IMG/VR virus record: IMGVR_UViG_3300042549_005931
Location: 205,134-269,133 of that record
Length of the DNA stretch: 64,000 nucleotides
Direction: 5' to 3' (one strand)
Numbering within the stretch: the stretch's first letter is position 1; every line of letters starts with the position of its first letter. The notes beneath the pieces are model-generated. The model had not been told where the DNA came from. It saw only the letters and a program-made list of their open reading frames with translations, and ran no database searches. Made by a program: the position numbers and the translations under genes. Positions 427-46,339 of this stretch are shown piece after piece.

Positions 427-427
427 T

Positions 428-13123: not shown

Positions 13124-14266
13124 TTATTTTATTCCTGCCATTTGTAGTATTAAGTCACCTTCCTCATCTGAAAATTTAGCCTTTCCTAAACCTGTCATCT
13201 TTTGTAATTTTTGGTCAAATGATGCAATTGCTGTACCTACTTTATTCCCCTTATCAACTGTACTTATTCCGTGTTCAACACCTTTACCCACACCATAAAC
13301 CGCAACACCTGTTGCGGTTGCTTTTGCACCTTCTTTAGAGAATAATTTACTTAAGAAAGCTGAAAATTTAGTTAATACATTATCAATAAATCCTAAAATT
13401 TTAGATATAACACCAGTCGAACTTTTTCCTAATTTTTTTGATAATGTGTTAGCTACACTTTTTAATTGACCCTTTAAAGATGGAATTTTTGTTGCCAATG
13501 ATTCAAGCATCTTTACCATTGTTGGGGCGGCTTTTTTTACACCTTTTTTAGCTATTGCTGGTACCGTTTTTCTAAATGCTAAAGCCGCACCACCCGTAAA
13601 AACACACCCAATTAAATCGGCGATTAAGAAGAAAAACGGCATTTGCATTCTTCCTGGGTCTTGTGGGTCATAATCTCCAGTACCAATTTCGTATATATCT
13701 AATAGTACAACCACAAACCACACAATTGCGTTTGTCTTTGCGGCTAATATTGAAACAATAACGTCAATTACAATACCAACACCCGTATAAAGTCCACGTC
13801 TTACCCACCTTAATGCCGGTAGAACACCCTGATTAAATACCGTTTTTGCAGTTTCTATTGCCGCAGAACCTAATGTGGAACCAATATTTTTAATCCCTGA
13901 GGTTATTGAATCCCAAATACCTTCCGAAATAACTCCTTTGTCGGCAATCCATTCGGAAACTAATTCTTTTTTCCATACGATTGATTCCACAATATTGTTA
14001 ATGTTAACTTTAACTTCCTCATTTAAAGTTTCCATTTTGGAAATTGATTCGTTAATTAGTTCATTAAAAATATATGTATGTTCCCAAATTGAACCAATTG
14101 TATTTCCGTCACCACCTGCAACAAATACATTGTCCATGATGATTACATATTTTTCATTTTCAGTCAATACAAAATCGAACACAAAGTCTTTTGATTTTTT
14201 GGGCTCATATAAAGACCTAATTCTATCTCTTTCAGATTCCGTAATTATCATTTTTTGACGTACCAT
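13124..14266 (-). CDS. putative virion/membrane protein with IITESE leader
   Basis: 380 aa with hydrophobic helices. Confidence 0.65.
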   Translation of the reverse strand: MVRQKMIITESERDRIRSLYEPKKSKDFVFDFVLTENEKYVIIMDNVFVAGGDGNTIGSIWEHTYIFNELINESISKMETLNEEVKVNINNIVESIVWKKELVSEWIADKGVISEGIWDSITSGIKNIGSTLGSAAIETAKTVFNQGVLPALRWVRRGLYTGVGIVIDVIVSILAAKTNAIVWFVVVLLDIYEIGTGDYDPQDPGRMQMPFFFLIADLIGCVFTGGAALAFRKTVPAIAKKGVKKAAPTMVKMLESLATKIPSLKGQLKSVANTLSKKLGKSSTGVISKILGFIDNVLTKFSAFLSKLFSKEGAKATATGVAVYGVGKGVEHGISTVDKGNKVGTAIASFDQKLQKMTGLGKAKFSDEEGDLILQMAGIK

Positions 14267-14267
14267 A

Positions 14268-14540
14268 TTATTTTAATTGATTTGCTTTACCTCTCTTTAA
14301 TGTGGAACCTACAATGTCAGACCATTTAGTCACACCAATTTGATTGGCAGGACCTCTTGTAAGACCACTTTCCCACTTACCAACTGATGGATAACCTTGA
14401 CCACCAGATTGAGTACTTGATGTGCCTGCACTTGGTGTAGAAGAAACAGGTTCAGCTTCCGATTGTTCATCAATTTCTTGATTTTGAACTTCGTTTGAAA
14501 GGATTAACTTTAACTGTTTTTCGGTTATGATATATTCCAT
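14268..14540 (-). CDS. small protein with IITEKQ leader
   Basis: Restarted at MEYIITEKQLKLILSNE. Confidence 0.7.
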   Translation of the reverse strand: MEYIITEKQLKLILSNEVQNQEIDEQSEAEPVSSTPSAGTSSTQSGGQGYPSVGKWESGLTRGPANQIGVTKWSDIVGSTLKRGKANQLK

Positions 14541-14613
14541 AGTTAATAAATATCGACAAATCTCTTTGTGGTTTATATAAAATATGTAATTTTGTAAAAA
14601 ATATAAACATAAC

Positions 14614-15189
14614 ATGAAAAAATTACTGTTATTTTCATCATTATTACTATCAGGATGTCAAGTATATGAGTTTCCAAACGAGACACCGAGGTTGACAGGA
14701 GGTAAATGGGTATTATCAAACTACGATATTGTTGTAATTAATTCAATATCTAATGTTACTGTTATTAAAAACGATACTGTTTGTATCAACGCATTTAATG
14801 GGCAGAGTTATGTTAGTGGAAATGTTTTGATGAAACAATTTTATAACCAAACGGCAAAAGACAGAAGATTTGTAATTGGTAAAACAACTTGGGAATTTGA
14901 CAGTAACAGTAATCACTTATATTGTGATTTTATGGATAAAAATGGTTCATTAATGCCTACACATAATCCATATTGGGTTAACATGTCAGGATATACAAGA
15001 AATATATCAATAAGTAATGTTGAAAATGGTGGTGTAACAAATTATACGTTTGAAACAAACACTGTTGGTGTAAACCCACCTAAAATATTAAAATTATTGA
15101 GTCCCGAAATTGTAACTGATTTATATGTTGATGGTGGTAAAAGAGATAAGGGTGTGACAGTTAGAATACTATTAACCTTTATGAGATAA
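14614..15189 (+). CDS. putative lipoprotein
   Basis: LLLSGC lipobox; TAATTTTG promoter element upstream. Confidence 0.7.
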   Translation: MKKLLLFSSLLLSGCQVYEFPNETPRLTGGKWVLSNYDIVVINSISNVTVIKNDTVCINAFNGQSYVSGNVLMKQFYNQTAKDRRFVIGKTTWEFDSNSNHLYCDFMDKNGSLMPTHNPYWVNMSGYTRNISISNVENGGVTNYTFETNTVGVNPPKILKLLSPEIVTDLYVDGGKRDKGVTVRILLTFMR

Positions 15190-15190
15190 A

Positions 15191-15959: not shown

Positions 15960-15961
15960 TT

Positions 15962-16455: not shown

Positions 16456-17493
16456 ATGAAACAATCTAAAATATTGTTTATCTTAAAAATAAAACAAAAT
16501 TATGGTGTCACTAACGATTATAGTATAGGACTAAGCACGGGTCTTTACAATTCAGCTCAATTTATGAATGAAATGTTAATAGATGGTGGATTTGATTCTC
16601 AAATGGTAAGTGTTGTTGACAACAATGATATTGATAGAGAGGTAACATTACACAAACCAACCCACGTTATTATTGAGGCACTTTGGGTTGTCCCATCTAA
16701 ATTCGAAGTTCTTTGCAAATTACACCCAAATGTTAAATGGGTAATTCGTTTACATAGTGAAATACCATTTTTAGCTAACGAAGGAATGGCGATGGATTGG
16801 TTAGGTGAATATTCAAAATATGATAATGTAATAATATCATGTAACTCACCTCAAACCACTAAAGATATTGAATTTTTTATTCGAGCCAAAACGGGTATTG
16901 ATAAAAAAATTGTATTTTTACCAAATTTTTATCCACAAGAATATAAAACAAAATCATTTAATTATAAAAGTGATATAATCCATGTGGGATGTTTTGGTGC
17001 GGTTAGACCACTTAAGAATCATCTTATACAAGCGGTCGCGGCAATTAAATTTGCAGATGAATTAGGTAAAAAATTACATTTTCATATTAATTCGGATAGG
17101 ATTGAACAAAAAGGAGAACCAATATTAAATAACCTATTAGGTATGTTTAATCATTTAGAACATAAAGGACATCAATTGGTACACCATGAATGGAGTGTTA
17201 GAGAAGAATTTATTCAATTATGTTCCACAATGGATATAGGTATTCAAATATCCTTTAATGAAACTTTTAATATAGTAGGGGCTGATGTGATTTCACAGGG
17301 GGTTCCGTTAGTATCATCACCAGAAATACCTTGGGCTAATTCATTATTTACCGCAAGACAAACAAATACGGATGATATTGTAAATTCATTATTATGTACT
17401 TACAAATACCCTAAAATTAATGTGTTATTAAATCAAAGAGGTCTTAAACAATATACAAATAAAACAAAAAAAATATGGTTTAAGTTTTTTTAA
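16456..17493 (+). CDS. GT-B fold (GT4-like) glycosyltransferase
   Basis: GCFGAVRPLKNH...SFNETFNIVGAD. Confidence 0.75.
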   Translation: MKQSKILFILKIKQNYGVTNDYSIGLSTGLYNSAQFMNEMLIDGGFDSQMVSVVDNNDIDREVTLHKPTHVIIEALWVVPSKFEVLCKLHPNVKWVIRLHSEIPFLANEGMAMDWLGEYSKYDNVIISCNSPQTTKDIEFFIRAKTGIDKKIVFLPNFYPQEYKTKSFNYKSDIIHVGCFGAVRPLKNHLIQAVAAIKFADELGKKLHFHINSDRIEQKGEPILNNLLGMFNHLEHKGHQLVHHEWSVREEFIQLCSTMDIGIQISFNETFNIVGADVISQGVPLVSSPEIPWANSLFTARQTNTDDIVNSLLCTYKYPKINVLLNQRGLKQYTNKTKKIWFKFF

Positions 17494-17521
17494 CGATATT
17501 TATATAGGTAAATAATATAAT

Positions 17522-17662
17522 ATGGCATTATTAAAAATTTCTGACGAGGAACGAAATAGAATTTCGGAACAACATAAAAAACTTGAAAAACAAGTCCAAC
17601 AAAATAAAGACGAATTAAAAAAAGGTTTACAACCACCTGAAAATAAAAAAACCTCCAATTAG
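17522..17662 (+). CDS. 46-aa protein with ISDEERNRI leader-like N-terminus
   Basis: MALLKISDEERNRISEQHKK...; TATTTATA at 17497; bidirectional terminator at 17645-17672. Confidence 0.6.
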   Translation: MALLKISDEERNRISEQHKKLEKQVQQNKDELKKGLQPPENKKTSN

Positions 17663-17674
17663 GAGGTTTTTTTA

Positions 17675-20029: not shown

Positions 20030-20778
20030 ATCTCATTTTTTAATAATTCTAAATCATACGGAACATTTGTCCCATTAATTTTTTGAAATGTCACTTCTTT
20101 ATTATCACTTTTGTATTCTTCCATAAATTTTAAATTTTCTTCAAGAAGATGTGACATTGTCCATCCTAATTTATGACAAAACCATCTACTCACATTCGCA
20201 TTTAATGGTTCTCTATCCATTATTATTAGTCTATCATATTGTCTTGAAATAAAATACATTAAATGTTCAAAACCTTCTGGATTTGGTATTGAATAGAGAT
20301 AATCAAAAAATTCAACACTGTGTAATTTCATATCTTCAAAAATATTATTTTTGTTTGTATTGGCAAAGAATATATCGGTAGACATATTAATTCTTTTGTA
20401 CCATATATTACCAGCATATGCACAATTTTGATTTTCAATATTCTTTAATATTTGAATTAATTTTTTTTCGTCCAATAACCAACTATCGATGGATAGTTTT
20501 ACCCATAAATTTACCCCGTTTGATTTTAGAAAATCATATCCACCTAATGTTAACTCACAATCTGCATCCGCATAATCACATCCACTTGGGTGTCTATCAT
20601 TACCTCTACCCCCATTAGGTTTATATTGACATCTAAAATCACATTCAAAATTTTCATCCGAACCATTATAACATAATGCAACATGTGGTTTTATTATTTC
20701 ATATGAATCTAATATTTTTTTTAGTTCAGGCCAATACTCCTCTCTATTATAACAAGTAATTATAAAATTAACATTCAT
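20026..20778 (-). CDS. hypothetical protein, GT-A-like
   Basis: 250-aa ORF inside the glycan cluster. Confidence 0.6.
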   Translation of the reverse strand: MNVNFIITCYNREEYWPELKKILDSYEIIKPHVALCYNGSDENFECDFRCQYKPNGGRGNDRHPSGCDYADADCELTLGGYDFLKSNGVNLWVKLSIDSWLLDEKKLIQILKNIENQNCAYAGNIWYKRINMSTDIFFANTNKNNIFEDMKLHSVEFFDYLYSIPNPEGFEHLMYFISRQYDRLIIMDREPLNANVSRWFCHKLGWTMSHLLEENLKFMEEYKSDNKEVTFQKINGTNVPYDLELLKNEI

Positions 20779-20781
20779 ACT

Positions 20782-23696: not shown

Positions 23697-23697
23697 A

Positions 23698-31666: not shown

Positions 31667-33403
31667 ATGGATATTAAAAAAATCATTCGTCAATTTTTAT
31701 TAGAACAAGAGGGTGAAGAGGCGGCACCACAACAACCACAGTTAACAAGACAACAAAGAGAATCATATGACCGTTTAGCTGCAAAATGGAAACAAGAAAA
31801 TCCTGAATTAAGTGATGATGAGGCAATGAAAATTTTCGTTGAGTTTAGAAAGGCATTATCCTTAATAAAAGATGAAACTCAGCCAGAAGTAAAATCATTT
31901 TTATTTCGAGGTAATGGTAAGTACACCATTAACGACTTAAGAACACCAAACAAAGTAAGTCTTCAAGACCTATTAGATTTTTTACTTGAATTAACAAGAT
32001 TCCGTATTAAACTTGGTGGTGGTGTAGACGAAAGAGCCAATTTAGAAAGACAAAGAATTGACAACATTTTTAATGAAAAAGTTGATAGAGGAGGTACAGG
32101 TTCCATCACACCAAAAAAGATTGAAGAATCTAAAAAAATGTGGGAAGGTCAACAAAATCTTGTAATTGATGAGGGTAACTTTAGAGTATACGAAATTAAT
32201 ACACAACAAGACGCTCAAAGATTTGGATACTATTATCAAGAAAAACTTAGAGAATTAGTTACTTACAATGTTGATAACCAAGTTGGTTCACTTATTGACA
32301 TATATAGGTCAAAGGATGATTACGCAAATCAACCTAGAACAAGATACTCGGTAACACCTTGGTGTGTTTTTAGTAGAGGTGAAGACCAAAAAGTGAGTTA
32401 CAAAAATCAAATGATTGTAAATCCAATTCGTAACATGTATACCAGTTATCGAAATGGTGCATTTTTCTATGTAGCAATTGATGAATCGAAAGATTTATTT
32501 GCACCGGGTGGCGAATATTACATTAGTACAATAATGGCAAGAAGTGATGGTGGTTTTAAAATCGCTTCAATGTATAATGGTGAATATAACGTATCACAAC
32601 AAGAGTTATTAAAAATTTATCCAAAATTACAAGGTCATTTTGATTCGTTTAATTATAAACCATTTGACCGTAACGCTGAGACTGACGAAAATGTCCCACA
32701 AAGCATAACTGACATCGTCAATGAAAATGAAGGTTCACCTAATGCTTTTTGGATGCAAACAATTGACACTAAAAGAGCATTTATTGAAGCTGGTGGATTT
32801 TTGAAAAATCCAAAATCGTGGGAAGCTATGAATAATGATTTGAGAAAAGAATATATAGACTCACTTCAAGACCACGATGCAAGACAAAAGATTGGTTCGG
32901 AAGAATTTATGAAGGCAATTTTCAAATCGGGTACCGCACTTAAACAAAGATTAGATAACAAATTGAAAGCCCTTGGTTTTTCAGGCATTGGTTATTTGGT
33001 TGACGACTTTATGAAAATTAATTACGGACCAGATTTTTATGGTAAGAAAAATAGTTTGATTAGAATATACAAAAACATTCATACTAAGTTGTATGGTATC
33101 TATGATGTTAATGAGGGTACTTGGTTAAATAGAGATGGAGTTGAGTATGAAGCCGAATTTACATTACGGTCATTACCAAAATCTGAAGATGTGTTTGATG
33201 ATGAAAATGATAAAATTTATACTGTAAATGAATTTGTTTCACCAAACGCTAAGTTCTATACATTAACTGACTTGGATGATAATGATTATAAAGTATATAT
33301 ACTATCTGAAAAGAAATATCGTGAATTAAAAGAAAAATTGGGTGATGACATTACACAACCTGATTTTGATACTGATACCGATATTGGTGAACAACACATA
33401 TAA
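31667..33403 (+). CDS. large hypothetical protein with LLEQ leader; partly paralogous to 38399..39352
   Basis: 578 aa; shared WC...MYTSYR...FY block. Confidence 0.7.
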   Translation: MDIKKIIRQFLLEQEGEEAAPQQPQLTRQQRESYDRLAAKWKQENPELSDDEAMKIFVEFRKALSLIKDETQPEVKSFLFRGNGKYTINDLRTPNKVSLQDLLDFLLELTRFRIKLGGGVDERANLERQRIDNIFNEKVDRGGTGSITPKKIEESKKMWEGQQNLVIDEGNFRVYEINTQQDAQRFGYYYQEKLRELVTYNVDNQVGSLIDIYRSKDDYANQPRTRYSVTPWCVFSRGEDQKVSYKNQMIVNPIRNMYTSYRNGAFFYVAIDESKDLFAPGGEYYISTIMARSDGGFKIASMYNGEYNVSQQELLKIYPKLQGHFDSFNYKPFDRNAETDENVPQSITDIVNENEGSPNAFWMQTIDTKRAFIEAGGFLKNPKSWEAMNNDLRKEYIDSLQDHDARQKIGSEEFMKAIFKSGTALKQRLDNKLKALGFSGIGYLVDDFMKINYGPDFYGKKNSLIRIYKNIHTKLYGIYDVNEGTWLNRDGVEYEAEFTLRSLPKSEDVFDDENDKIYTVNEFVSPNAKFYTLTDLDDNDYKVYILSEKKYRELKEKLGDDITQPDFDTDTDIGEQHI

Positions 33404-34422: not shown

Positions 34423-34884
34423 ATGAAGAAAACAATTTTTGCATCCGCGATTGTTCTTTTTTCATTCGTATCTTTTGGTAACACATTAGATTCTTTATCG
34501 AAAAAAGACACCATTAAGAGTAAAATTGGTGAAATCAACAAGAATACCTTGTACAATCAGATTGTCGAAGCGGGTATTCAATTTCCTCAAATCGTTCTGG
34601 CTCAAGCTCTTTTAGAATCAGGACATTTTAAATCCAAACTGTTTAAGTATAATAACAATTTGTTTGGTATGCGTTTGCCCAAAGCAAGAAAGACCACAGC
34701 TATTGGAAAGAAACGTCATTACGCCGTTTATAAAGATTGGATAGGTTCAGTCGAAGATTATAAACATTGGCAAAATAAAATCCCAAATAAACACAAGAGT
34801 TCTAAGAAGGCTTACTTGAGGTACTTAAGTCGTTATTACTCGAAATCGGGAAATTATAGTAAAAAATTGAAAAAAATTATCTAA
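34423..34884 (+). CDS. exported glucosaminidase (GH73-like)
   Basis: Signal peptide; LAQALLESG...NNLFGM. Confidence 0.85.
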   Translation: MKKTIFASAIVLFSFVSFGNTLDSLSKKDTIKSKIGEINKNTLYNQIVEAGIQFPQIVLAQALLESGHFKSKLFKYNNNLFGMRLPKARKTTAIGKKRHYAVYKDWIGSVEDYKHWQNKIPNKHKSSKKAYLRYLSRYYSKSGNYSKKLKKII

Positions 34885-34916: not shown

Positions 34917-35351
34917 TTATAAGAATCTTTTAAAATTTGCTTTTATTTTTTGAACAGATTCGTTCATCATTTCATTCTCTTCTTCCTCATCTTCTTCTTC
35001 TTCCTTCTCATCTTCTTTTTCTTCGTCACCCATCACAGGAACTTCATTTTCTTCTTCCTCCTCATCCTCTTCTTCTTCCTCATCTTCTTTCTCTTCACTC
35101 TTACCACTTAAGATAGTACTTTTTGCTAAACTAAAAATCCCTTCAATATAGTCTGGGTCTTTGCAGTTATCAGGGAATAATTCACAATATAAATCGGCAA
35201 TCTTTTCGATTGACTCGTGAGTAGATTCTTCTTTCTCTTCTTCTTCGTTAGCTTCTTTAGCAAAACCAAATCCTGCTTGTTGCTCTTGAATATTCTTTGA
35301 TTTAATAATTCTTTTTAATTGTTCTTCGGTAATTTTGATTTTATTTGCCAT
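34917..35351 (-). CDS. acidic low-complexity protein with ITEEQ leader (scaffold/core-like)
   Basis: Poly-E/D tract; C-terminal MNESVQKIKANFKRFL. Confidence 0.7.
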   Translation of the reverse strand: MANKIKITEEQLKRIIKSKNIQEQQAGFGFAKEANEEEEKEESTHESIEKIADLYCELFPDNCKDPDYIEGIFSLAKSTILSGKSEEKEDEEEEEDEEEEENEVPVMGDEEKEDEKEEEEDEEEENEMMNESVQKIKANFKRFL

Positions 35352-35472: not shown

Positions 35473-35832
35473 TCATTCGTCACCACGCCATCTTCCTGGT
35501 GCGTTTTGGTATATATCTGACATCATGTTAACATAATTTTTTTCAACCTCATCTCTATTTGTAACACTTGCAATTAGTTTTGGAATCATATTGGAAATGT
35601 TTTCAATCGATAATTTAATACTTTCAATATATTCCTTTTCTGCCGGTGTGTATTTGCCATCTCCAAATAACATGGTTGACGTAGCATCGGCAATATGACC
35701 ATTTACCTTCTCAAGAAAAAAATTGCCTCTATATAAATTATATATTAGTTGGTTATCCTTATCGGATAAATCTTCATTAACTAATGAGGTAGTTATTCTT
35801 TTTAATTGTTCTTCACTTATTTTGACTTTCAT
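35473..35832 (-). CDS. leader-bearing hypothetical protein
   Basis: MKVKISEEQLKRITTSLVNED. Confidence 0.75.
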   Translation of the reverse strand: MKVKISEEQLKRITTSLVNEDLSDKDNQLIYNLYRGNFFLEKVNGHIADATSTMLFGDGKYTPAEKEYIESIKLSIENISNMIPKLIASVTNRDEVEKNYVNMMSDIYQNAPGRWRGDE

Positions 35833-35835: not shown

Positions 35836-36465
35836 TTATAACTTAGGTTTTATCATATTATAAATTAATTCACTAATATCTTCAGGGTCAGTGATTCCCG
35901 CTTTCTGTACTTTACCTTTTAACATGTTAAGATACCCCTCAAACATTTTATCGGTATAATTGTCATAACCACCTGTATCTCTAACATTTTGGTCTGCCGG
36001 TATAACACCCATTGATTGTAGTTGTCTACATTTTCTCAATGCAAATTGGTCAGCAACATTCTCAATATATCTTAAAAATCCAACGGCACCATCTGTTTCC
36101 AATTCACCTGTATACATATCATATATCAATTCCTTACTATATTTGTTGTATTGGTGTTGATGCGCAATCTCATGAAAAATAACAAACATCAAATCAGCCA
36201 ACGCATTTGGATTTGGTTTTAATCCATCTTCTAAAAGTCCACTTGATATTACAACTCTATTGTGTAACGATAAACCATTTGCCATTGACATTGGTTCGAA
36301 ACCAATATTCTGACATCCTGATTTTTCAATATTTGATTTAATAGTATTCCTATGTTCATCAAGTTCAGGGAATTTATTAACTATTTGGTCAATAAATAAA
36401 TCCATACCACCAGTTTCCTCGTTGAGTAATTTAAAATATTGACTTTCAGTTAAAATGATATTCAT
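35836..36465 (-). CDS. leader-bearing HExxH metallopeptidase-like protein
   Basis: MNIILTESQ...LLNEE; FHEIAHQHQ...ENVADQFA. Confidence 0.75.
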   Translation of the reverse strand: MNIILTESQYFKLLNEETGGMDLFIDQIVNKFPELDEHRNTIKSNIEKSGCQNIGFEPMSMANGLSLHNRVVISSGLLEDGLKPNPNALADLMFVIFHEIAHQHQYNKYSKELIYDMYTGELETDGAVGFLRYIENVADQFALRKCRQLQSMGVIPADQNVRDTGGYDNYTDKMFEGYLNMLKGKVQKAGITDPEDISELIYNMIKPKL

Positions 36466-36884
36466 TACTTATGTTTTATAATTAATTCTCCCAAAACTTC
36501 TAAACGACCCACTTCTTTTTGGAATGTAGTTTGGTCCATCTCTAATGAAATACTTTTTAATGTTTCTTTAAATTCTTTTTTTGCATCATCAACATCAAAC
36601 TTACCTTCTTTCGCTTTTTTATAATATGGAAATTTCACTTTAAAGTGATGATAGGTTAACATTGCCGGACCACCTTTTCTTTTTGAATTCTCAGCAATCT
36701 TTTCGGCCCCACCTAATCTTTTCTCCGCAAACTCATCAAATACTCTTGGTGAATTGTTTCTACCACATTTATGACAAAGATACGGTTTTTTACCACCTTC
36801 AGATTTTTTCCAAGACCAACCACATTGACATTCAATATTGTCAACTTTCTCTTCAAATAATAAGTCAATTAATTTAATTCCCAT
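36465..36884 (-). CDS. hypothetical protein with Zn-ribbon
   Basis: CQCG...CHKCG; MGIKLIDLLFEE N-terminus. Confidence 0.7.
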   Translation of the reverse strand: MGIKLIDLLFEEKVDNIECQCGWSWKKSEGGKKPYLCHKCGRNNSPRVFDEFAEKRLGGAEKIAENSKRKGGPAMLTYHHFKVKFPYYKKAKEGKFDVDDAKKEFKETLKSISLEMDQTTFQKEVGRLEVLGELIIKHK

Positions 36885-37390
36885 TATACTTCAGAATCTT
36901 CGTTAAACATTAAATCATACCAAGACATCGGTAATACAACAGATATTTTAGTTTTTTTATCGTTGACATCGACTCTAATAAGATTATTCATACTATCACG
37001 ATATTCCATACCACCAAATATACGTAACACCTCATTATAAATTTCTTCAGTAAAATCTAAACGAATAGCAAACAAATCATTGGAAGTTTCTGGTTTAATC
37101 AATTTATATCCTTGAGCTTCACCTAATTCTCTTAATTCTCTTGCCATTACCTCATCATCACCTTCACCACCCTCAATAAATGATTGTCTTTCAGGTTCTC
37201 TAAATGATTCAGGTATATCAGTTTCACCACCACTTTTTAAGTAGTCAATTTCATCTTGAGCCATACCCTCTAACCCAACTTCATTATATTTGTCAAGTAT
37301 TAAATCGTATATATGTGAATCAAAATCCTCATTGATTAATGATGAAATTCTTTTCAATTGTTCTTCTGTTAATATAATTTTCTTTCCCAT
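36884..37390 (-). CDS. leader-bearing acidic protein
   Basis: Restarted at MGKKIILTEEQLKRISSLINED. Confidence 0.75.
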   Translation of the reverse strand: MGKKIILTEEQLKRISSLINEDFDSHIYDLILDKYNEVGLEGMAQDEIDYLKSGGETDIPESFREPERQSFIEGGEGDDEVMARELRELGEAQGYKLIKPETSNDLFAIRLDFTEEIYNEVLRIFGGMEYRDSMNNLIRVDVNDKKTKISVVLPMSWYDLMFNEDSEV

Positions 37391-37406
37391 GTATATAAAT
37401 ACTATT

Positions 37407-38398: not shown

Positions 38399-39352
38399 TT
38401 ATTTACCCAATAAATAATCAAATTGTTCATCGGTTAATATGTGACCACGCCCAATATATTTTGATTTATAATCATATGGTAATTTAATAAACCATTCCAA
38501 ATCTGTGTTACGAAAACCTAATAATTGTTGTTCACGTTCCTCTTCAGGTGTTTTTGGTCTATTCTGCAACAACTCATCAACAGGTACTCCCATTGATTTC
38601 AAATATTGAACATATCCATTTGCATCGTTTCCATATTCCGAAATATTACCTGTGTGATTATCGGCATCTGTTAATAATGGACCTCTTTGTGTGTGGTCAA
38701 ATACTACAATATGTAATGGGTCACTTAAATCAACCGAACCATCCTCATTTGTTTTCATCTTATTTTTGTCTACAATAAAATAAAATGTTGAAGTTTGATT
38801 ATCTCTATAAGATTGATACATACTATTTCCTGGTTGACCAATACAGAAACTATATCTTTTACCCGTCAATCCACCTTGTGTATATTTTATACATCTACCA
38901 ACATCAACACCATCATAAATGTCAATGTTGTTACCTGACCACATTGTTTTATCCATGGCCTCAATGTCCTCATCATCCATAGAATATGAACTTGATTTTG
39001 GTTTTTCAGCATATTTGTTTTTTTCTCCGTGGATAAATTCTGAGAATGCAATAAAATTATCATATGTATTGTTACCAACCATTAAACGACCTTTAGAAAC
39101 TTGAGCCGGCATAATTCTTTTTTTGGTAACCAATTCGTCATAATCATTCATCACATCAACAATATTACCAAGGTCTTTATAACCACCAGCATATAATACC
39201 GCCATCAACGGGATGTTCTTTTGATTTTGAGATTGGTCATTTGCCGCAAAATAACTAATTATTTTTTCAGGTGATTCTACATTGGACTTCTTAAGATAAG
39301 CCAAACCTGTGGCTTCAGTGGCTCTTGATTCAAATAAATCTATTAATTTCAT
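38399..39352 (-). CDS. hypothetical protein, partly paralogous to 31667..33403
   Basis: MKLIDLFES; SFCIG...MYQSYRD...FYF. Confidence 0.7.
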   Translation of the reverse strand: MKLIDLFESRATEATGLAYLKKSNVESPEKIISYFAANDQSQNQKNIPLMAVLYAGGYKDLGNIVDVMNDYDELVTKKRIMPAQVSKGRLMVGNNTYDNFIAFSEFIHGEKNKYAEKPKSSSYSMDDEDIEAMDKTMWSGNNIDIYDGVDVGRCIKYTQGGLTGKRYSFCIGQPGNSMYQSYRDNQTSTFYFIVDKNKMKTNEDGSVDLSDPLHIVVFDHTQRGPLLTDADNHTGNISEYGNDANGYVQYLKSMGVPVDELLQNRPKTPEEEREQQLLGFRNTDLEWFIKLPYDYKSKYIGRGHILTDEQFDYLLGK

Positions 39353-39364: not shown

Positions 39365-40051
39365 TTACACATCGAAACATTTTACGTTTCCTTCTTTATC
39401 TAATCCAAATTGTTCAAAACTTCTATCAAAATATTCAAACCTCCCCATAGTACCCTCAACACCAAGAACACAATCACGTAGATTAATGAAAAAATCCGAA
39501 ATTGATGGGTCGTACTCATTTAATTTATCAACAACCTCCCCATATTTCTTTTCATTTTTTGAACCATCAATCAAACCAAATATACCTCTTGAAAAACCAA
39601 TCTCCTCGATGGCGTTTTGTAATTTAATACACTCTTGTTTGAAACCCTTCGTATCTAATCTATCCATAATGGCAACACCAAGGTTACTATAATATAAATT
39701 TTTATATGGTTTTACTTTATGAATTGAAACATAAAGGTTAGGATATTTGTCAAAGAATTCTTTTTCTTTAACTAAATCCTCGTAACCCCATAATTTAAAA
39801 ACCAAATCAGGATTGGTGTGTGATAAATAAACTTCACGTTCCCTACCTTTACCTAATATTTTTTTTTCTCTAGTTCTAACCTCATCAAGGTCCCTTACTT
39901 CCTTATCATATTCTTTAAAACGTAAAGGATTGGACATCATTGCAGATTTAGGGAACAAACGTTTCTTTCTTGTGTTTGCAAGTGTACGACCCCTCTCGTC
40001 TAATTCAGATTCTATATGTTTAATTTGGGATTCGGTTAGTATAACTTTCAT
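39365..40051 (-). CDS. leader-bearing protein-kinase-like fold protein
   Basis: LGKGREREVY...VFKL...IMDRL...QFG...CFD. Confidence 0.6.
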   Translation of the reverse strand: MKVILTESQIKHIESELDERGRTLANTRKKRLFPKSAMMSNPLRFKEYDKEVRDLDEVRTREKKILGKGREREVYLSHTNPDLVFKLWGYEDLVKEKEFFDKYPNLYVSIHKVKPYKNLYYSNLGVAIMDRLDTKGFKQECIKLQNAIEEIGFSRGIFGLIDGSKNEKKYGEVVDKLNEYDPSISDFFINLRDCVLGVEGTMGRFEYFDRSFEQFGLDKEGNVKCFDV

Positions 40052-40062: not shown

Positions 40063-40800
40063 CTACTTATTCACCCATTTATCGATTGCACTCATATAAT
40101 TCTCACCCATATGGTCCTTAATAGTTTCACCAGAAAATAATGATTTAATATAATCCCAATAATACCCTAATGTATTCTCACCCTTCTTAACATTACCATC
40201 ACTATCAAGTCTCAATTGGAAATTAACATGTTGAAATCCAATGTATGGTGTATGTGTAACCAAATCATTATTATGAACAACACGGATACTTTCTATATCA
40301 CTCTTATCAAAGTTTTGTTTGAATACCTTGTTACCCACACGTGGACTACCAATTGTACAACACTCCACATGAAATCCGTAAAATCTGTCCTTAATACTAT
40401 AAGCCATCAATGTTGCAACCGCGCCACCCAAACTATGTCCACATACAACCACACTATCAACTGTGCTCATCCCCTCATTAGCTTCCCTAATTGCAGAATA
40501 AACATCTTCAGCCACCGGTTCCCAACAAGACTTAAATCCAATGTGAACCTTCTCACCCTCCTTGATAAATGGTACTTTCTGAATAGAACCATCATTCTGA
40601 AAATCTTTCTTCGATTCACTTCCTCTGAATACAACATATATTCTTCTATTCTTTATCGCAACAAACCCCTGTGTGTCCGATGGCTTGTGCTCAATCCATT
40701 TTACCAAACCTAACTTATGGTTTTCCCAATCAATGGATTCCCGTGTCTGATATGCAAGAACAGCAAGTCTCGCATTGTATTGTATTTCTTTGTTTGTCAT
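40063..40800 (-). CDS. lipase, class 3
   Basis: VFRGS, VHIGF, GHSLGG, GSPRVGN, DLVT. Confidence 0.92.
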   Translation of the reverse strand: MTNKEIQYNARLAVLAYQTRESIDWENHKLGLVKWIEHKPSDTQGFVAIKNRRIYVVFRGSESKKDFQNDGSIQKVPFIKEGEKVHIGFKSCWEPVAEDVYSAIREANEGMSTVDSVVVCGHSLGGAVATLMAYSIKDRFYGFHVECCTIGSPRVGNKVFKQNFDKSDIESIRVVHNNDLVTHTPYIGFQHVNFQLRLDSDGNVKKGENTLGYYWDYIKSLFSGETIKDHMGENYMSAIDKWVNK

Positions 40801-41075: not shown

Positions 41076-41678
41076 TTATTCCTCCAATTTTAATTCCAAA
41101 ATATTAATTTGTTTTTTAATTTTTTCTTTTTCTTCTTTATAATCGGCAAGATATATTTTATAATAATCCCAAACATATTTATCATTAGGGTCCAATAATC
41201 CCTTTTCAGTTAACTCAATAGTTCTATTCAAACTATTTAACTTATCCGTTAGTTCTTTTAATTTAATTTTTAATTTAAGTTTATCCATCCCAATTTTACG
41301 TTGCTTTTTTCTTTCTCTCTCTTCTCTTTTGGCAATTTCTTCTTCTTCATCTTCTTTTTCTACAGTATTTAAATCAACACCATATTCGTTATATTTTTTT
41401 GGTCCATTATTATATGGTAATGGTTCAATACCATAAGAACTACCTCCCCCAAACATATAATTGTCATATTCATCACCATCCAATTTAAAATCAATTTCGT
41501 GACCATATTTAACCAACTCCATGTACAATTTTGGATTTTTTTCTCTTATTTCATCCATATTATCATAATGAGCGGCATCATTCATTAAAGTCACGATATA
41601 ATCATCGTCTGTTAATTGTGGGGTTGAAATCTCTGATATTACGTATTTAATTTGTGTTTCACTTAATATTATTTTCAT
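41076..41678 (-). CDS. leader-bearing hypothetical protein
   Basis: MKIILSETQIKYVISEI. Confidence 0.72.
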   Translation of the reverse strand: MKIILSETQIKYVISEISTPQLTDDDYIVTLMNDAAHYDNMDEIREKNPKLYMELVKYGHEIDFKLDGDEYDNYMFGGGSSYGIEPLPYNNGPKKYNEYGVDLNTVEKEDEEEEIAKREERERKKQRKIGMDKLKLKIKLKELTDKLNSLNRTIELTEKGLLDPNDKYVWDYYKIYLADYKEEKEKIKKQINILELKLEE

Positions 41679-41691
41679 AATATATAAATAC

Positions 41692-42267
41692 CTATATTTT
41701 CACATTAAAGTTTATCACACATCGAACATTCTCAGTAGGTCCACTACTCGAATGATACCGGTTACCATTAAACACCAATACCCTACCCTTCTTTGGTGTA
41801 ACCGTTTGAATTACATTTAGTTCACCGGTCCTATCACCCAATACCTTATCGAAAATATACGTATCACCATCCGAATCATTTACGTAGTATAATACAACCA
41901 AATGTTCATATGACACATCAATATGTGGATTGTCAAATTCCTTTCTTTTGTTTAATGGGAATTGTATAAAAGACCTACCATTACAGATATCCTTTAATGT
42001 GAAATTAAAATTATTACATACAAGTTCCGGTATCACCCTTGTCTGTGATAAAAGATAGTCATTAACATATGGTGGATTATCTTGTTTGATGTAACAACCA
42101 ATTCCCGGTGTAACATCTTTAATTCCTAATCTCTTTATTTCGTCAGGTGATAATGCAATGTCTTGAAAGAATATCCAAGGCAATGGTGATGATAAAAATA
42201 GTTGTTCCATTTTATCTTGAACGTCCAATGGAATCACATCGTCCAATATATAAATTTCATTTATCAT
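41692..42267 (-). CDS. 2OG-Fe(II) oxygenase
   Basis: PHID...LYYVNDSDGDT...VFNGNRYHSS; restarted at MINEIY. Confidence 0.85.
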   Translation of the reverse strand: MINEIYILDDVIPLDVQDKMEQLFLSSPLPWIFFQDIALSPDEIKRLGIKDVTPGIGCYIKQDNPPYVNDYLLSQTRVIPELVCNNFNFTLKDICNGRSFIQFPLNKRKEFDNPHIDVSYEHLVVLYYVNDSDGDTYIFDKVLGDRTGELNVIQTVTPKKGRVLVFNGNRYHSSSGPTENVRCVINFNVKI

Positions 42268-42333: not shown

Positions 42334-42969
42334 TTACTTGTTCCTATTCTTTAAATACAAATTAGTATGATATTCCATATGACTATTCAATAATTTAATA
42401 TCATTTTCTACATCAGAATAAAATTTCTCCTCATCTCGTAATTCTATGGCCATTGAAGTAGGTGTAAAATTAGTGTATGGTTTAAATTTATAAAATATTC
42501 TCGTCAATGTCTTAAACGTACTTATTACATTTAACCATTTTAATAATTCCAATTTTACTTTTTCCCATAATTCAAATTCTATGCTCTTCAGTGCAAATTC
42601 TTTTTTTATCTCACCATCATCATCTCTACGAATACGTTCAACATTCCAAAATATTTGTAATGTTAACATACACATTTCAATATCTTCAAATTTACTGTAC
42701 CCTTTTTTTGTGGTAAATATTGGGATATCAAAAACCATTGTTACATAACCTGGATACATACTCCCTTTTTCCTCATTTTTTCCCAAAAATTGTATGTTTT
42801 TAACAAATTCTCCGTCTGAATTAGGTTCAATATCATTATCTTGGTTTATCTCAGGTTCAACATTATTATCAACTTCAGGTTCCTCATCATCAAACCAACC
42901 GGAATTTTGTTCGTTTAAACCCATAATTTTTTTTATATGGGATAGCTCTTCGTTTAAATTAGTTTTCAT
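42334..42969 (-). CDS. leader-bearing hypothetical protein
   Basis: MKTNLNEELSHIKKIMGLNEQ. Confidence 0.75.
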   Translation of the reverse strand: MKTNLNEELSHIKKIMGLNEQNSGWFDDEEPEVDNNVEPEINQDNDIEPNSDGEFVKNIQFLGKNEEKGSMYPGYVTMVFDIPIFTTKKGYSKFEDIEMCMLTLQIFWNVERIRRDDDGEIKKEFALKSIEFELWEKVKLELLKWLNVISTFKTLTRIFYKFKPYTNFTPTSMAIELRDEEKFYSDVENDIKLLNSHMEYHTNLYLKNRNK

Positions 42970-43061
42970 ATGTTTAATAAATATACCGGAACCGGTATAT
43001 GTGCATAAAAAACCCCCTTGTTTCCAAGGGGTTCGTTATTTTAATTTAATGGGATTGTTTG

Positions 43062-43595
43062 TTAGCGTTCGGCACCCATTACATCCCCTTTAATTTTTTG
43101 ACCTTCAATATCGGCAATAACTTTACCATCAACCTTAATGTTGAAGTATAACATCTTTGCAACATTGTTGATATTCTGTGTTAAATAACCCTGTGGTTTA
43201 TTCCCAACGATTGCGTTATTGGTCAATCTTGCACCCAACGTGGTTTGTATCTTTGATATGATTGGACCATTTATTTTAACAATGTTTGGGTCAATAAATG
43301 TGATGGTCATTGCCATAGCACCAACCGCAGGGTTCACCTCAGATTGTGTGAAAGTAATGGTTGATGTTAATTTATTTTCTAACGTATAACTTAGTTGATT
43401 ATCATTATCAACCACGTAATCATATGTAAGTTTCATATAGTTAGCAAAACCTTTCCACGAATCTATTTTCATTGTTGGTTGTGCAACTGCTGTGGTTTTT
43501 GCCGGTACATTAAACTTATTACTTACCGCTTGCTCATTAATCATTCCATCAATGACCTTCTTAATTTGTTCTTCTGTGAATATATATTTTTTCAT
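43062..43595 (-). CDS. leader-bearing protein, paralog of 45818..46339
   Basis: Restarted at MKKYIFTEEQ; shared DPNI.K...IQT.L...G..P.GYL.Q block. Confidence 0.75.
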   Translation of the reverse strand: MKKYIFTEEQIKKVIDGMINEQAVSNKFNVPAKTTAVAQPTMKIDSWKGFANYMKLTYDYVVDNDNQLSYTLENKLTSTITFTQSEVNPAVGAMAMTITFIDPNIVKINGPIISKIQTTLGARLTNNAIVGNKPQGYLTQNINNVAKMLYFNIKVDGKVIADIEGQKIKGDVMGAER

Positions 43596-43936
43596 TATGC
43601 GTACATGTCGTTTGTAATAGAGTAATATAATTTTTCCCAATCTCTAACAGTTATACTATCATTAGGATTTACAAATTGTTTGATTGTTTCTTTCAATACC
43701 TCAACCATTTTTTCTGGTGTCACATTCGAATCTTCAGTATGACCACCATCTAAATGTTCCACAATAAACAATAATTGTTCTTGTAGATTAATACCATTTG
43801 ATTTAGTTTCACTTTCCATATCAGATGAATAATCTTCGAAAGATTGTTCATTCAATCCTTTCTTATATCCATGTGACTGATGTTGTTTAAGGATTTGTTC
43901 CCTTTCAGATTCTGTTAAATTAAAATTCTTATACAT
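43595..43936 (-). CDS. leader-bearing hypothetical protein
   Basis: MYKNFNLTESEREQILKQH...GLNEQ. Confidence 0.75.
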   Translation of the reverse strand: MYKNFNLTESEREQILKQHQSHGYKKGLNEQSFEDYSSDMESETKSNGINLQEQLLFIVEHLDGGHTEDSNVTPEKMVEVLKETIKQFVNPNDSITVRDWEKLYYSITNDMYA

Positions 43937-44019
43937 AATAAATTGTTTTCTATATAAATACCCTATAAGCATAAAAAAACCCCACCATATGGTGGGGTTT
44001 TTATCTTAAATTAAAATCT

Positions 44020-44805
44020 TTAATCGAGTGTACCGTTTTCTCTCCTTAATTCAAAGTCTTTTAATCGAGCATTTAATTTTTTTCTCTCACTGTCACGGTA
44101 GTCATCAAATGAAGCATATTTGGCATCATATGGTTCCTCTAAATTCGGGTCTCTTCTACTTTGTCTAACCTCCTTCTCAAAAGATGCCGCATTTGGTGAT
44201 TTTCTATACTTACCATATACATCATTATTGATGTGGTCTTCATATTTTTGAATGTCTTCAATTCTTCCATTCCAATCATACCATTCATTTGGTCCAAACT
44301 CCACAGCGATTCTACCGTTATAACTATTTTGAAATTTGTTGGTCATTGCAACTTTTTCTTCGTCGGTTAATTGTTTAGGTGAGTCTATTTTAATTTTAGT
44401 TAACCAAATCATACCCATACCCTCATTTAATGATTTTTTAAATCTATTAAGTATTTTTTGGATTGATTCTTGAAGTGGCTCAAGTTCCGCCGGTTCAGGT
44501 TTAGTCACCTCTTCGTCATGTTTAATTTCTGGAGGTAAAAATTTTGTAGTAGTTACATAAGGGATTGTCTTTTCATTTGGTGATTTTATTTTATTTTTAG
44601 GATTCGCAGCATTAAACTTTTGCATGTATTGTGCGGGTGTAATTTTACCTTTTCTTTTTAAATCCCATAAATTTGAGTTGTAATCGTTCAAATCACTTAA
44701 TCTTTTGGATTCCTCGGGTGAAATTGCGTTTACTTGTTGTTCTGACACAATCCCACGTATCAATTCAACCAATTTCGATTCTGTTAGTCTAACTATTTTT
44801 TTCAT
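44020..44805 (-). CDS. leader-bearing hypothetical protein
   Basis: MKKIVRLTESKLVELIRGIVSEQ; internal LQESIQK...LNEG. Confidence 0.75.
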   Translation of the reverse strand: MKKIVRLTESKLVELIRGIVSEQQVNAISPEESKRLSDLNDYNSNLWDLKRKGKITPAQYMQKFNAANPKNKIKSPNEKTIPYVTTTKFLPPEIKHDEEVTKPEPAELEPLQESIQKILNRFKKSLNEGMGMIWLTKIKIDSPKQLTDEEKVAMTNKFQNSYNGRIAVEFGPNEWYDWNGRIEDIQKYEDHINNDVYGKYRKSPNAASFEKEVRQSRRDPNLEEPYDAKYASFDDYRDSERKKLNARLKDFELRRENGTLD

Positions 44806-44869
44806 TTTAAAAGTTTTTTATTATAAATATATTATATCATATAAAAATCCCGGTTCCGGCGTACGAGTT

Positions 44870-45805
44870 TTATTTTAATATGTCTGGAACATATACCCAA
44901 GCATTCTGTTTATACGTGCCGTACTTCTTAAGCGCGGATGTTGTTCTGTGCCAACCCTCCTGAAGTTCATACTTACCATCTTTTGTTTGAATAACAATAA
45001 TTGGTTCGGGAGATACCCCAACCTTTTCCAATTGGGATTGTTGGGTGTTATGTCTCTCCTCATCTTTTGGTATGTCGGTTCTAACAAAACCACCCATCTT
45101 CTTTATTAAATCCTTTTTGTTATTATCTGTGAATATATCTATGGAAACATCTAATATCCGGTATTCCCACTGTCCCTTACCATGACCCTCCACAAAACTT
45201 TCCACAAAGGACTTAATTAATCTTCTATGTAAATCAGCACTACCTTGGTCATATTTCTTTGTCTCGTAATTGGGAAGATATTCTTTGCTGTTCTTGTATA
45301 ACCAATCCCTTAACACATACTCAGGCCAATCTTGTCCTGTAAGTTCTTTTGTTTTGGTTCTAACATAGTTCATCCACGAATTCCTAATCTCAGTGACAAT
45401 ACCCACATTCTCCTCTAACTTTAATTTCTTCTTATACTTAACATCCTTCTCCGGTATTATAATAACCTTGGCATTCTTAACACCCATCTGTTTAAGTGCC
45501 GTATACCTATGATGTCCATCAATTATCTCATACCCACCCTTTACCTTATGTACCAACATCGGCATTACCTTCTTATGTTTCTTATAATACTTGATTATAC
45601 CATCAACCTTATCCTGATACTCCTTCTCCTGTTCATCACTCTTTGGTTGATTGAATTTTAATTTACTCAAGGGTACACTAACCTTATCAGTCTTCTCAAG
45701 GTCACCCTTAGCCCAATTGAACTTAGCCCCCTCACCCTTTTGAATATGAGCCCATATCCTTTCACGTAAACTACCAACTTGAGATTCTGTAAGAATAATA
45801 TTCAT
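44870..45805 (-). CDS. leader-bearing protein with two ParB/Srx-like domains
   Basis: MPMLV...YEIIDGHHRY and EPIIV...YELQEGWHR. Confidence 0.75.
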   Translation of the reverse strand: MNIILTESQVGSLRERIWAHIQKGEGAKFNWAKGDLEKTDKVSVPLSKLKFNQPKSDEQEKEYQDKVDGIIKYYKKHKKVMPMLVHKVKGGYEIIDGHHRYTALKQMGVKNAKVIIIPEKDVKYKKKLKLEENVGIVTEIRNSWMNYVRTKTKELTGQDWPEYVLRDWLYKNSKEYLPNYETKKYDQGSADLHRRLIKSFVESFVEGHGKGQWEYRILDVSIDIFTDNNKKDLIKKMGGFVRTDIPKDEERHNTQQSQLEKVGVSPEPIIVIQTKDGKYELQEGWHRTTSALKKYGTYKQNAWVYVPDILK

Positions 45806-45817
45806 AATGTATTTGTT

Positions 45818-46339
45818 TTAATTTTTTCTTGTTGATTGAAATGTATTATAATCACCGTAATCCCTAATATTATCATCCGGTGTATTTGCAATGGTATAAC
45901 CATTAATCTTAATCACATTGAATAATATATTGGCAACCTTATCAATGGTTTGTATTAAATAACCCTCAGGACTATTTCCCATAATGGTATTATCAACCAA
46001 CTTGGTTTTTAATAAAGTCTGAATCGTAGATATACTTGCACTATTCGTTTTGATTATATTAGGGTCATTGATTTTTATCTCCATTGATATTCTACCGGTG
46101 TTCATATCAATTGGTGTCCAAGCAATAACCATGGTAACCAATTTTTCAAAGTCATATGTTAATCTGTTTTCATTCTCTATGGTATATCCATATGTTGATT
46201 CCAAGTGATTACTTAAGTTATCCCAATTATGTTGTGTTGCCGGACTAATTACACGTTTAACTGTCTGTTCATTTAATGGTTCCTTATATCCCATAACCTC
46301 GCGGATACGTAAAACCTCTTCGTTGATATTCTTTTTCAT
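45818..46339 (-). CDS. leader-bearing protein, paralog of 43062..43595
   Basis: MKKNINEEVLRIREVMG...LNEQ. Confidence 0.75.
   Translation of the reverse strand: MKKNINEEVLRIREVMGYKEPLNEQTVKRVISPATQHNWDNLSNHLESTYGYTIENENRLTYDFEKLVTMVIAWTPIDMNTGRISMEIKINDPNIIKTNSASISTIQTLLKTKLVDNTIMGNSPEGYLIQTIDKVANILFNVIKINGYTIANTPDDNIRDYGDYNTFQSTRKN

Follow-up and report, generated by a model that had tools for sequence, protein, structure and literature searches.

Leader genes in the window

The window analysed here is the final 64 kb (positions 205,134-269,133) of the virus contig IMGVR_UViG_3300042549_005931 (269,133 bp), an AT-rich stretch in which a number of minus-strand genes encode proteins that begin with the same kind of conserved N-terminal leader, about 20 residues long. 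The bodies behind these leaders are unrelated to one another by BLASTP, as the original prediction had held, the sole exception being g43595 and g46339, which have paralogous bodies (40% identity) behind leaders of different style. We have found 14 robust cases, in two groups located at 13.1-14.6 kb and 34.9-46.3 kb (Table 1), and four further genes with weaker versions of the leader; the figure of about 18 leader proteins given originally is reached only by counting the latter. The same prediction had described two leader styles, but three can be separated. Twelve of the robust leaders belong to style 1 and two to style 2, and style 3, MKL(I/L)D(I/L)(I/L)xE, comprises the first three of the weak cases in Table 1 and has a strong recurrence in related phages.

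The leader family is real and strictly N-terminal. A search of the six-frame translation of the window with the core pattern [ILV][TS]E[ESTK][QE] gave 10 matches, all of which lie 2-6 residues past the ATG that opens a real minus-strand open reading frame (ORF). Within ORFs of at least 50 aa the pattern was observed 10 times, against a mean of 1.2 and a maximum of 6 in 200 residue shuffles. The style-2 pattern N[ILV]NEE has two matches, each 3 residues past a start ATG, and in a leave-one-out comparison with hidden Markov models (HMMs) 10 of the 12 style-1 leaders outscored the best non-leader segment of the window. The conserved leader residues are written in several synonymous codons (Thr in four codons, Ser even in both of its codon families, TCN and AGY), which indicates that selection on the leader acts at the peptide level and not at the nucleotide level.

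The layout of the leader is a short hydrophobic stretch followed by a helix that begins at T/S-E. All 14 robust leaders have an (L/I/V)-x-E tripeptide at residues 14-30 (hereafter the second Glu), and 13 of them have another one at residues 5-9 (the first Glu), usually LTE or ITE, the fourteenth having FTE. Leaders are amphipathic and acidic, without a hydrophobic core, and in none of them is there the stretch of 10-20 hydrophobic residues after a basic N-terminus that marks Sec or lipoprotein signal peptides; genuine signal peptides do occur in other genes of the window, as at 34423 and 14614. Searching the ESM Atlas with the leader alone was uninformative and a homologue search restricted to residues 1-40 of g37390 returned orthologues only. 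The conservation profile of these orthologues was not used as evidence, as it is biased by the choice of hits.

Among the bodies, that of g40051 has, according to its AlphaFold2 (AF2) model, a protein-kinase-like fold: the body is modelled confidently (residues 1-60 have a pLDDT of 42-56), Foldseek retrieved APH (APH(2'')) and Ser/Thr kinases with a probability of 0.99, and Phage_T7_kinase was the nearest Atlas cluster. The body of g45805 matches ParB_N in Pfam (E=4.5e-7) and ParB-like proteins in PHROG, and its second ParB-like half stands alone in related phages, behind a style-1 or a style-2 leader. The HExxH-containing body of g36465 looks like a metallopeptidase from its sequence, with a weak Pfam match to M48 and ESM Atlas leads to the M48, M78 and SprT-like families. 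The bodies of g35351 (35% D+E) and g37390 are very acidic, and that of g14251 contains hydrophobic, Gly-rich segments that are membrane-spanning in appearance. Foldseek gave no significant match for the body of g43595, and the remaining leader proteins are ORFans with no telling database match.

As to the weak cases, the C-terminal domain of the gene at 36465-36884 recurs in database proteins after a style-1 leader and the basic module described below, and the homologues of the gene at 31667-33403 in the related contigs L009 and L010 begin MNITDLVYDVLVEE. The gene at 10961-13105, directly downstream of g14540 and g14251, has no significant Pfam match; read by eye, its C-terminal stretch looks like a peptidoglycan-binding domain.

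The basic module of g40051 (residues ~17-57) reads (I/L)DERSRxLAxTRKKRLFPKSAMMSNPxRFKEYDKEV and opens with another (I/L)-D-E. It is also present in L009 near 15074, L010 near 14347 and L011 near 11577. In database proteins it is found after the leader or between two domains, its partners being PF01329 (pterin-4a-carbinolamine dehydratase), a membrane protein and the C-terminal domain of the gene at 36465-36884.

Table 1. Leader genes and associated features, in window coordinates; the name of each robust leader gene gives the position of its start.
Feature	Position	Strand	Length (aa)	N-terminus	Remarks
g14251, leader style 1	13124..14251	-	375	MIITESERDRIRSLYE	length from leader ATG; candidate cleavage sites ITE5 and LYE16; weak tape-measure PHROG match
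g14540, leader style 1	14268..14540	-	90	MEYIITEKQLKLILSNEVQNQEIDEQ	candidate sites ITE7, IDE25
g35351, leader style 1	34917..35351	-	144	MANKIKITEEQLKRIIKSKNIQEQ	TATTTATA at 35365-35372
g35832, leader style 1	35473..35832	-	119	MKVKISEEQLKRITTSLVNED	
g36465, leader style 1	35836..36465	-	209	MNIILTESQYFKLLNEE	HExxH body
g37390, leader style 1	36884..37390	-	168	MGKKIILTEEQLKRISSLINED	TATTTATA at 37394-37401
g40051, leader style 1	39365..40051	-	228	MKVILTESQIKHIESELDE	basic module RGRTLANTRKKRLFPKSAMMSNPLRFKEYDKE; kinase-like body
g41678, leader style 1	41076..41678	-	200	MKIILSETQIKYVISE	TATTTATA at 41683-41690
g42969, leader style 2	42334..42969	-	211	MKTNLNEELSHIKKIMGLNEQ	
g43595, leader style 1	43062..43595	-	177	MKKYIFTEEQIKKVIDGMINEQ	body paralogous to g46339
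g43936, leader style 1	43595..43936	-	113	MYKNFNLTESEREQILKQHQSHGYKKGLNEQ	TATTTATA at 43953-43960
g44805, leader style 1	44020..44805	-	261	MKKIVRLTESKLVELIRGIVSEQ	TATTTATA at 44822-44829
g45805, leader style 1	44870..45805	-	311	MNIILTESQVGSLRE	ParB_N and second ParB-like half
g46339, leader style 2	45818..46339	-	173	MKKNINEEVLRIREVMGYKEPLNEQ	
Weak style-3 leader gene	38399..39352	-	317	MKLIDLFESRATE	
Weak style-3 leader gene	36465..36884	-	139	MGIKLIDLLFEEK	zinc ribbon after the N-terminus
Weak style-3-like leader gene	31667..33403	+	578	MDIKKIIRQFLLEQEGEE	
Weak case	10961..13105	-	714	MENNKTSVLLNEGALQKF	internal segment VNESLSQIVKRVLNE
Glucosaminidase (PF01832)	34423..34884	+			Sec-type signal peptide
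Lipase_3 gene, leaderless	40063..40800	-			within array; Pfam E=8.7e-29
Tail-collar-like gene, leaderless	46346..46720	-			at array border; PHROG tail-protein matches
Terminator-like hairpin	43014..43031	-			between g43595 and g42969; similar ones at 43975-44002 (downstream of g44805) and 46757-46782

Leaders in related phages and public data

The ParB-like cargo led to related contigs of 17-335 kb, which contain dense runs of the same N-termini on different bodies, with about 14 leader genes within 20 kb in the relative L004. Across this clade style 1 takes the form M-x(1-5)-h-h-(T/S)-E-x-Q-h-K..., including the variant MSKIIKLTESDLxxLVKRVIKEQ, and style 2 the form MNL(N/Q)ENIxR(I/V)K(E/Q)(V/L)MG(L/I)..E. 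The leader style on orthologous bodies differs between phages. For example, the single-domain ParB-like body follows a leader of style 2 in L002-L004 but one of style 1 in L009-L010, and the ParB-like body of the window carries a style-1 leader plus an extra ParB_N domain. The body family of g43595 and g46339 occurs with four leader variants, all of them joined at an invariant (I/L/M)NEQxV, and the NEQ junction is followed by a variable Pro/Ala/Lys linker. One of the four is of the g43936 type, which the neighbouring gene carries: the database protein P0141 has such a leader joined to the g43595 body at the common NE|Q, and its sequence looks like the result of a deletion between the two adjacent genes via recombination at the conserved end of the leader. 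These junctions indicate that the leader is a separable module that is exchanged between bodies at the second Glu. The AF2 models of g40051 and g43595 place it as a separate, low-confidence helix outside the body fold, followed by a disordered linker; in g43595 the predicted helix covers residues 8-21, with INE21 at its end, a disordered segment (22-43) comes next, and the body is modelled confidently.

The original prediction had proposed searching for the leader beyond the window with an HMM, and this bore fruit. A profile made from ten style-2 leaders was searched against 1.84 billion cluster-representative proteins (E<=0.001) and recovered 379 distinct carriers (<=50% identity). In nearly all of the best 150 matches the alignment begins at residue 1, and the 75 carriers among them that have at least 110 aa fall into 41 BLAST body families. 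An (L/I/V)-x-E tripeptide lies 3-4 residues past the MG in 146 of these 150 carriers, with L (85), I (53) or V (8) at P3 and never S or A. Column entropy stays at 1-2 bits through the Glu, rises to 2.9 at P1' and is 3.6-4.0 from P2' on. The profile contained the LNE columns and the recovery of the motif is therefore partly circular, an objection that does not apply to the sharp drop in conservation behind it.

Among the style-2 carriers, P0199 (518 aa; L198 694-2250, plus strand), which comes from a different metagenome, contains leucine-rich-repeat-like SLPEGL(K/E)VGGDL repeats. The genomic context of two style-2 representatives was limited to short contigs. A scan of IMG/VR with the octapeptide TEEQLKRI found it N-terminal in only 19 of 42 in-frame matches and also inside unrelated proteins; a single octapeptide is therefore unspecific as a probe. 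Pfam searches with 20 leader proteins of the relatives returned Glucosaminidase and otherwise almost nothing. Glucosaminidase homologues in L003 and L004 have a leader where the window gene has a Sec signal peptide, a swap that would fit a switch between two routes to the cell wall, and another relative has the leader on a domain akin to the lysin's peptidoglycan-binding portion.

The cultured Flavobacterium phage immuto (NC_055915.1) has a head module of the same type as the one described below, prohead serine protease included. No style-1 or style-2 leader was found in it with the leader HMMs. Different proteins of this phage begin with recurrent sequences of its own that contain (L/I)-x-E, MKKQILSEQF(R/K)RMQxLAGIITES in gp083 and gp230 and M..NFxL(R/K)xFL(T/V)EN(K/R)L... 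in gp077, gp076 and gp003, plus one case of style 3 (MIKLIDLLTES, gp231). The clade of the window phage has no cultured member, and no proteome of its nearest cultured relative was found.

Head module, protease and candidate cleavage sites

A T4-type head module is located on the same contig, ~20-30 kb upstream of the window. It consists of Terminase_6N, Portal_T4, a 245-aa protein, a 141-aa protein, Peptidase_S77, an acidic 392-aa protein and the Gp23 capsid protein, which is the T4 order 17-20-67-68-21-22-23. The acidic protein sits in the gp22 position and the 245-aa and 141-aa proteins in that of gp67/68, assignments made by gene order and composition only. A gene for ribosomal protein S21 (PF01165; L112 9246-9434, minus strand; contig ~178.8 kb) lies within the module, between the portal-side genes and the protease and on the opposite strand. 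Also near the head module, this phage encodes a ClpB-like double AAA+ protein of 673 aa (L110 15602-17623, minus strand) and an HSP20 small heat-shock protein (L110 17792-18157, plus strand).

The protease (L112 10001-10684) matches PF03420 (Peptidase_S77) on L111/L112 and the structure of T4 gp21 (PDB 5jbl, E=6e-12). Its ELNHP and GISSRG align with ELNHP and GVSSRG of T4, and the His and Ser motifs are kept; the crystallised 5jbl chain departs from the wild type at exactly those His and Ser positions. The N-terminal ILIE|Y of the protease aligns with LLIE|T of its T4 counterpart. The latter cleaves after the Glu of L/I-X-E, its own N-terminal sequence agrees with the cleavage logo, and the first 10 residues of IPIII are enough to direct it to the capsid (PMC9026906). 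In T4 an Asp in the cleavage position stops processing but leaves targeting intact (PMC9026906). The diverse internal proteins of T-even phages have the targeting sequence as their sole common part (PMC3012670). According to the T4 record, the sites are FLTE|AEIGG in gp23, MAKINELLRE|S in gp24, MKTYQEFIAE|A in IPII and IPIII, and ...TITE|A in IPI.

The LTE and ITE of the leaders are the tripeptides of T4 gp23 (FLTE|A) and IPI (TITE|A). Residues 68-106 of the capsid protein align with residues 89-127 of T4 gp23, and YLINE|AAVSD (LINE60) is found just upstream; across 47 distinct capsid proteins of the clade LINEA does not vary, and the stretch after it is variable. INE and LNE are the commonest leader endings, and the predicted maturation site of the capsid protein has the tripeptide with which several leaders end.

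Promoter motif

The TATTTATA promoter that most leader genes were predicted to have was found in exact form within 45 nt upstream of 5 of the 14, and of 9 when one mismatch was allowed; leader genes without a TATTTATA of their own sit within operons. The motif is a general one, however, and not specific to leaders. It precedes, as (G)TATTTATA and at a distance of 10-30 nt, the terminase, portal, protease and scaffold-like genes, is found before lysin and lipoprotein genes, and the same motif precedes head genes of phage immuto. Counted within 45 nt upstream, it is present at 6/16 head/tail genes, 5/14 leader genes and 1/27 genes of the presumptive early block (the plus-strand genes at 49.9-64 kb). 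We have therefore rejected it as a leader-specific feature, given its modest enrichment over the window as a whole (21 sites, 13.3 expected) and the many non-leader genes that it serves. It is a general promoter of this phage group that marks a temporal class, probably late. Sites resembling sigma-70 promoters were not enriched (93, 110 expected). Several leader genes are flanked by hairpins followed by the promoter motif, and the array as a whole has a cassette-like layout, with promoters and terminator hairpins between genes.

Phage identity and genomic setting

There were no close relatives of the window among 50,697 deposited phage genomes. In the cultured-phage collection neither megablast with the array nor tblastn with two leader proteins gave a match, and a close cultured relative is therefore absent. 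The nearest cultured relatives of the capsid protein are Flavobacterium phage vB_FspM_immuto and Rhodothermus phage RM378, and many proteins of this genome carry signal or lipoprotein peptides in the style of the Bacteroidota; a host from that group is therefore probable. The phage itself probably belongs to a huge, T4-like, freshwater Bacteroidota lineage, which is abundant in the lakes behind JGI sample 3300042549 and the KRAE22-1 ENA assemblies.

ARAGORN identified 14 tRNA genes in the window and Rfam a fifteenth (4868-4940). There is also a tmRNA gene, with the tag peptide GNVYKNMEIAGILATSNVAVA; the tRNA and tmRNA genes lie at 92-5468 and 10336-10737 (plus strand). Between the tRNA cluster and the tmRNA gene lies a full-length GOLLD RNA (8088-8470, plus strand; Rfam RF02032, model positions 1-416, 280 bits with a gathering score of 150). 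A tandem pair of paralogous genes for 2OG-Fe(II) oxygenases (PF13640; 3126-4254, plus strand) is located within the tRNA cluster, and a third ORF resembling these oxygenases is found within the leader array (41692-42267, minus strand). The two groups of leader genes are separated by a block of glycosyltransferase-like and methyltransferase-like genes (16456-24951), recognised by eye, that includes a 784-aa multidomain protein. A 22-nt direct repeat, with the consensus ATTxxTCAACCTGGTAATGTTT, is present three times at 49650-49779 (plus strand) with a spacing of 52-56 nt, in a gene-poor divergent region of 1.3 kb directly before the first gene of the plus-strand block; these repeats could be regulatory or origin-related. 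Immediately upstream of the window (L107 3864-7423, minus strand) two large secreted proteins (643 and 542 aa) with signal peptides have a weak C-type lectin match and similar C-terminal domains, and small lipoproteins come after them. At a comparable place the annotation of phage immuto has lectin and cohesin-domain proteins.

Proposed capsid targeting and its alternatives

The explanation that we favour, with a probability of roughly 0.6, is that the leaders are T4-like capsid-targeting propeptides on an expanded set of cargo proteins. The cargo genes would be transcribed alongside the head genes from the common TATTTATA promoter, and the leader of about 20 residues would bind the scaffolding core during prohead assembly. 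The gp21-family S77 protease would then cut after the Glu in one or both of the (L/I/V)-x-E sites (residues 5-9 and 14-30), and the mature cargo, freed inside the head, would leave together with the DNA when the next cell is infected. The analogy with the T4 targeting sequence drawn in the original prediction held at every point tested: the head module, the S77 protease, the (L/I/V)-x-E sites, the capsid tripeptide and the exchangeable nature of the module. Of the features that define the T4 targeting/internal-protein system, the sequence shows the common N-terminal tag, the gp21-type motif at its end and the S77 protease, together with candidates for the scaffolding core by gene order and composition and a promoter motif that may place expression at the time of prohead assembly. 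A role of the cargo as an arsenal of effectors is suggested by the kinase-like fold, the ParB-like domain and the HExxH motif.

A number of points weigh against this explanation. Scaffold binding, cleavage, presence in the virion, ejection and the role as effectors are steps that we infer, and the cleavage site of the capsid protein is itself a prediction from alignment and motif. (L/I)-x-E is a very short motif, and the first Glu could be conserved for structural reasons since T/S-E-x-Q doubles as a classic helix N-cap. Compared with the T4 targeting sequence of 10 residues, the leader is longer and much more strongly conserved, and beyond M-K and h-x-E (h, hydrophobic) it has no sequence similarity to MKTYQEFIAE. 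The segments of g14251 that resemble membrane-spanning ones are unusual for a cargo stored in the capsid. The promoter is likewise found before genes whose products are surely not capsid cargo (lipoproteins and the lysin, for example) and would point to shared timing at best. Finally, the P1' residue after the second site is often Q, E or D, while the T4 sites checked have A, S or T there and the capsid-protein site of this phage has A.

This last feature would sit well with a leader that is never cleaved and serves as a docking or oligomerisation helix for another shared partner in the infected cell, not the capsid. The ClpB-like AAA+ protein and HSP20, the replication/transcription factory or the membrane would be the candidate partners. 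Docking peptides typically have the form predicted for the leader, a helix standing by itself on a flexible linker, and the ClpB-like ATPase and HSP20 are encoded near the head module. A docking helix, however, leaves unexplained why conservation stops exactly at a Glu with L/I at P3, why the same tripeptide is present at the predicted maturation site of the capsid protein and why the position is strictly N-terminal (from residue 1 in nearly all of the best 150 style-2 matches). We consider this alternative, with any of the partners named, unlikely.

The cassette-like array raises another alternative, in which the shared N-terminus has no targeting role and is either a relic of ancestry or a stretch of homology for the shuffling of cassettes by recombination. 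Shuffling mediated by promoter early stem-loop (PeSL) elements is documented in T4-type phages (PMC2839356), and the P0141 fusion, a g43936-type leader on the g43595 body joined at NEQ, is an event of the kind expected. However, conservation is found at the level of amino acids, with free synonymous change that includes switches between the Ser codon families, and three styles of differing sequence have a common layout of (L/I)-x-E sites. Moreover, the leader is kept on 379 carriers, and the top hits of at least 110 aa span at least 41 body families. Recombination at the leader seems to follow from its conservation and not to be the reason for it, and we regard this explanation as quite improbable.

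The synonymous variation also makes it very improbable that the conserved first codons work as an RNA element that enhances translation initiation on the Shine-Dalgarno-poor mRNAs of Bacteroidota, perhaps together with the phage S21. Although the S21 gene lies within the head module and the starts are A/U-rich, conservation runs for at least 20 residues and stops at a defined Glu, and head genes under the same promoter have no leader. Equally hard to credit is a non-classical export signal across the cytoplasmic membrane: the glucosaminidase that has a Sec signal peptide here and a leader in relatives, and the leader-bearing domain akin to the lysin's peptidoglycan-binding portion, would agree with it, but the leader is amphipathic and acidic without a hydrophobic core, the cargo includes proteins of cytoplasmic type (an ATP-dependent kinase-like fold, ParB-like domains) and dedicated secretion genes were not seen in the 101 kb examined.

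Returning to capsid targeting, its broadest form would be a capsid-loading code of about 20 residues common to a widespread clade of huge, T4-like phages that infect freshwater Bacteroidota, in three styles that end in protease sites, with hundreds of unrelated, exchangeable cargo families loaded for the next infection. The cargo would then comprise kinase-like, ParB-like and metallopeptidase-like proteins, a peptidoglycan hydrolase and leucine-rich-repeat-like proteins. We give even odds to this extended proposal and to that list of cargo.

Injected proteins are the first phage molecules that host defences encounter, and recognising them from sequence alone is very difficult. If the leaders do load capsids, one short profile would flag the injected-protein repertoire of a large group of uncultured phages, and metagenomes could be searched for injected phage proteins with the leader as a sequence tag. 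What is known of the T4 targeting principle comes from a handful of small coliphage internal proteins; the principle would turn out to be ancient and, here, expanded to dozens of cargo proteins per genome with interchangeable styles. The T4 tag is already in use for packaging foreign proteins into phage heads, and the leaders would be natural alternatives to it. With a head module of this type and recurrent N-termini of its own, phage immuto offers a cultured system in which the idea can be tested at the bench.

Comparison with known systems

In the searchable literature, which is incomplete, no such leaders are described outside T-even and phiKZ-like phages. The PeSL cassettes from the hyperplastic regions of T4-type phages resemble the array in that ORFans flanked by a promoter and a terminator hairpin are shuffled between relatives (PMC2839356). 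PeSL promoters, however, are early, sigma-70-like and intergenic, whereas the motif found here is that of the head genes and the conserved element includes the first ~20 codons, with selection at the peptide level. The Dar antirestriction proteins of phage P1 are large enzymes carried in the head that are injected and act early, and their N-terminal region is needed for packaging (see PMC9024508). They are packaged via an ordered set of partner proteins and not by a common cleavable leader, and the P1 head is not of the T4 type.

The propeptides of phiKZ, 201phi2-1 and SPN3US come closer. These phages also have large genomes and many proteins inside the head, and a protease of the gp21 lineage cuts after Glu, with several sites per propeptide (PMC5694885, PMC9026906). 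Proteases of the phiKZ/SPN3US type prefer S/A-x-E, and the propeptides often exceed 100 residues and have no shared short leader (PMC5694885). The leaders described here depart from that pattern, with L, I or V at P3 and a common tag of ~20 residues, and the head module is clearly T4-like, including the scaffold-like protein in the gp22 position.

The targeting sequence of T4 (IPI, IPII, IPIII and Alt), which is removed by gp21, differs from the leaders in several respects. It has 10-19 residues, against ~20 here with a conserved helix and two candidate sites. There are three interchangeable leader styles in our case, and a different host group. The predicted cargo set is far larger, with at least 14 members in this one window, and it includes enzyme-sized proteins that reach several hundred residues; the internal proteins of T4 are small and basic. 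In the T4 genome (NC_000866, 65.4-73.9 kb), ipII and ipIII adjoin the lysozyme gene e and ipI is just past the tRNA cluster. The cargo genes here likewise lie away from the head module and near a lysin and a tRNA cluster, as T4 ipI-III do; that the leader arrays flank the lysin near the tRNA cluster (window 1-46 kb) may be a coincidence. In both systems the cargo set varies between related phages (PMC3012670, PMC9026906), and a gp21-family protease, a gp20 portal, a gp23 capsid protein and a scaffold-like protein are encoded in the T4 order. Both, finally, have a short N-terminal tag on otherwise unrelated proteins, and in both this tag ends in (L/I)-x-E, as in the IAE|A and ITE|A of T4.

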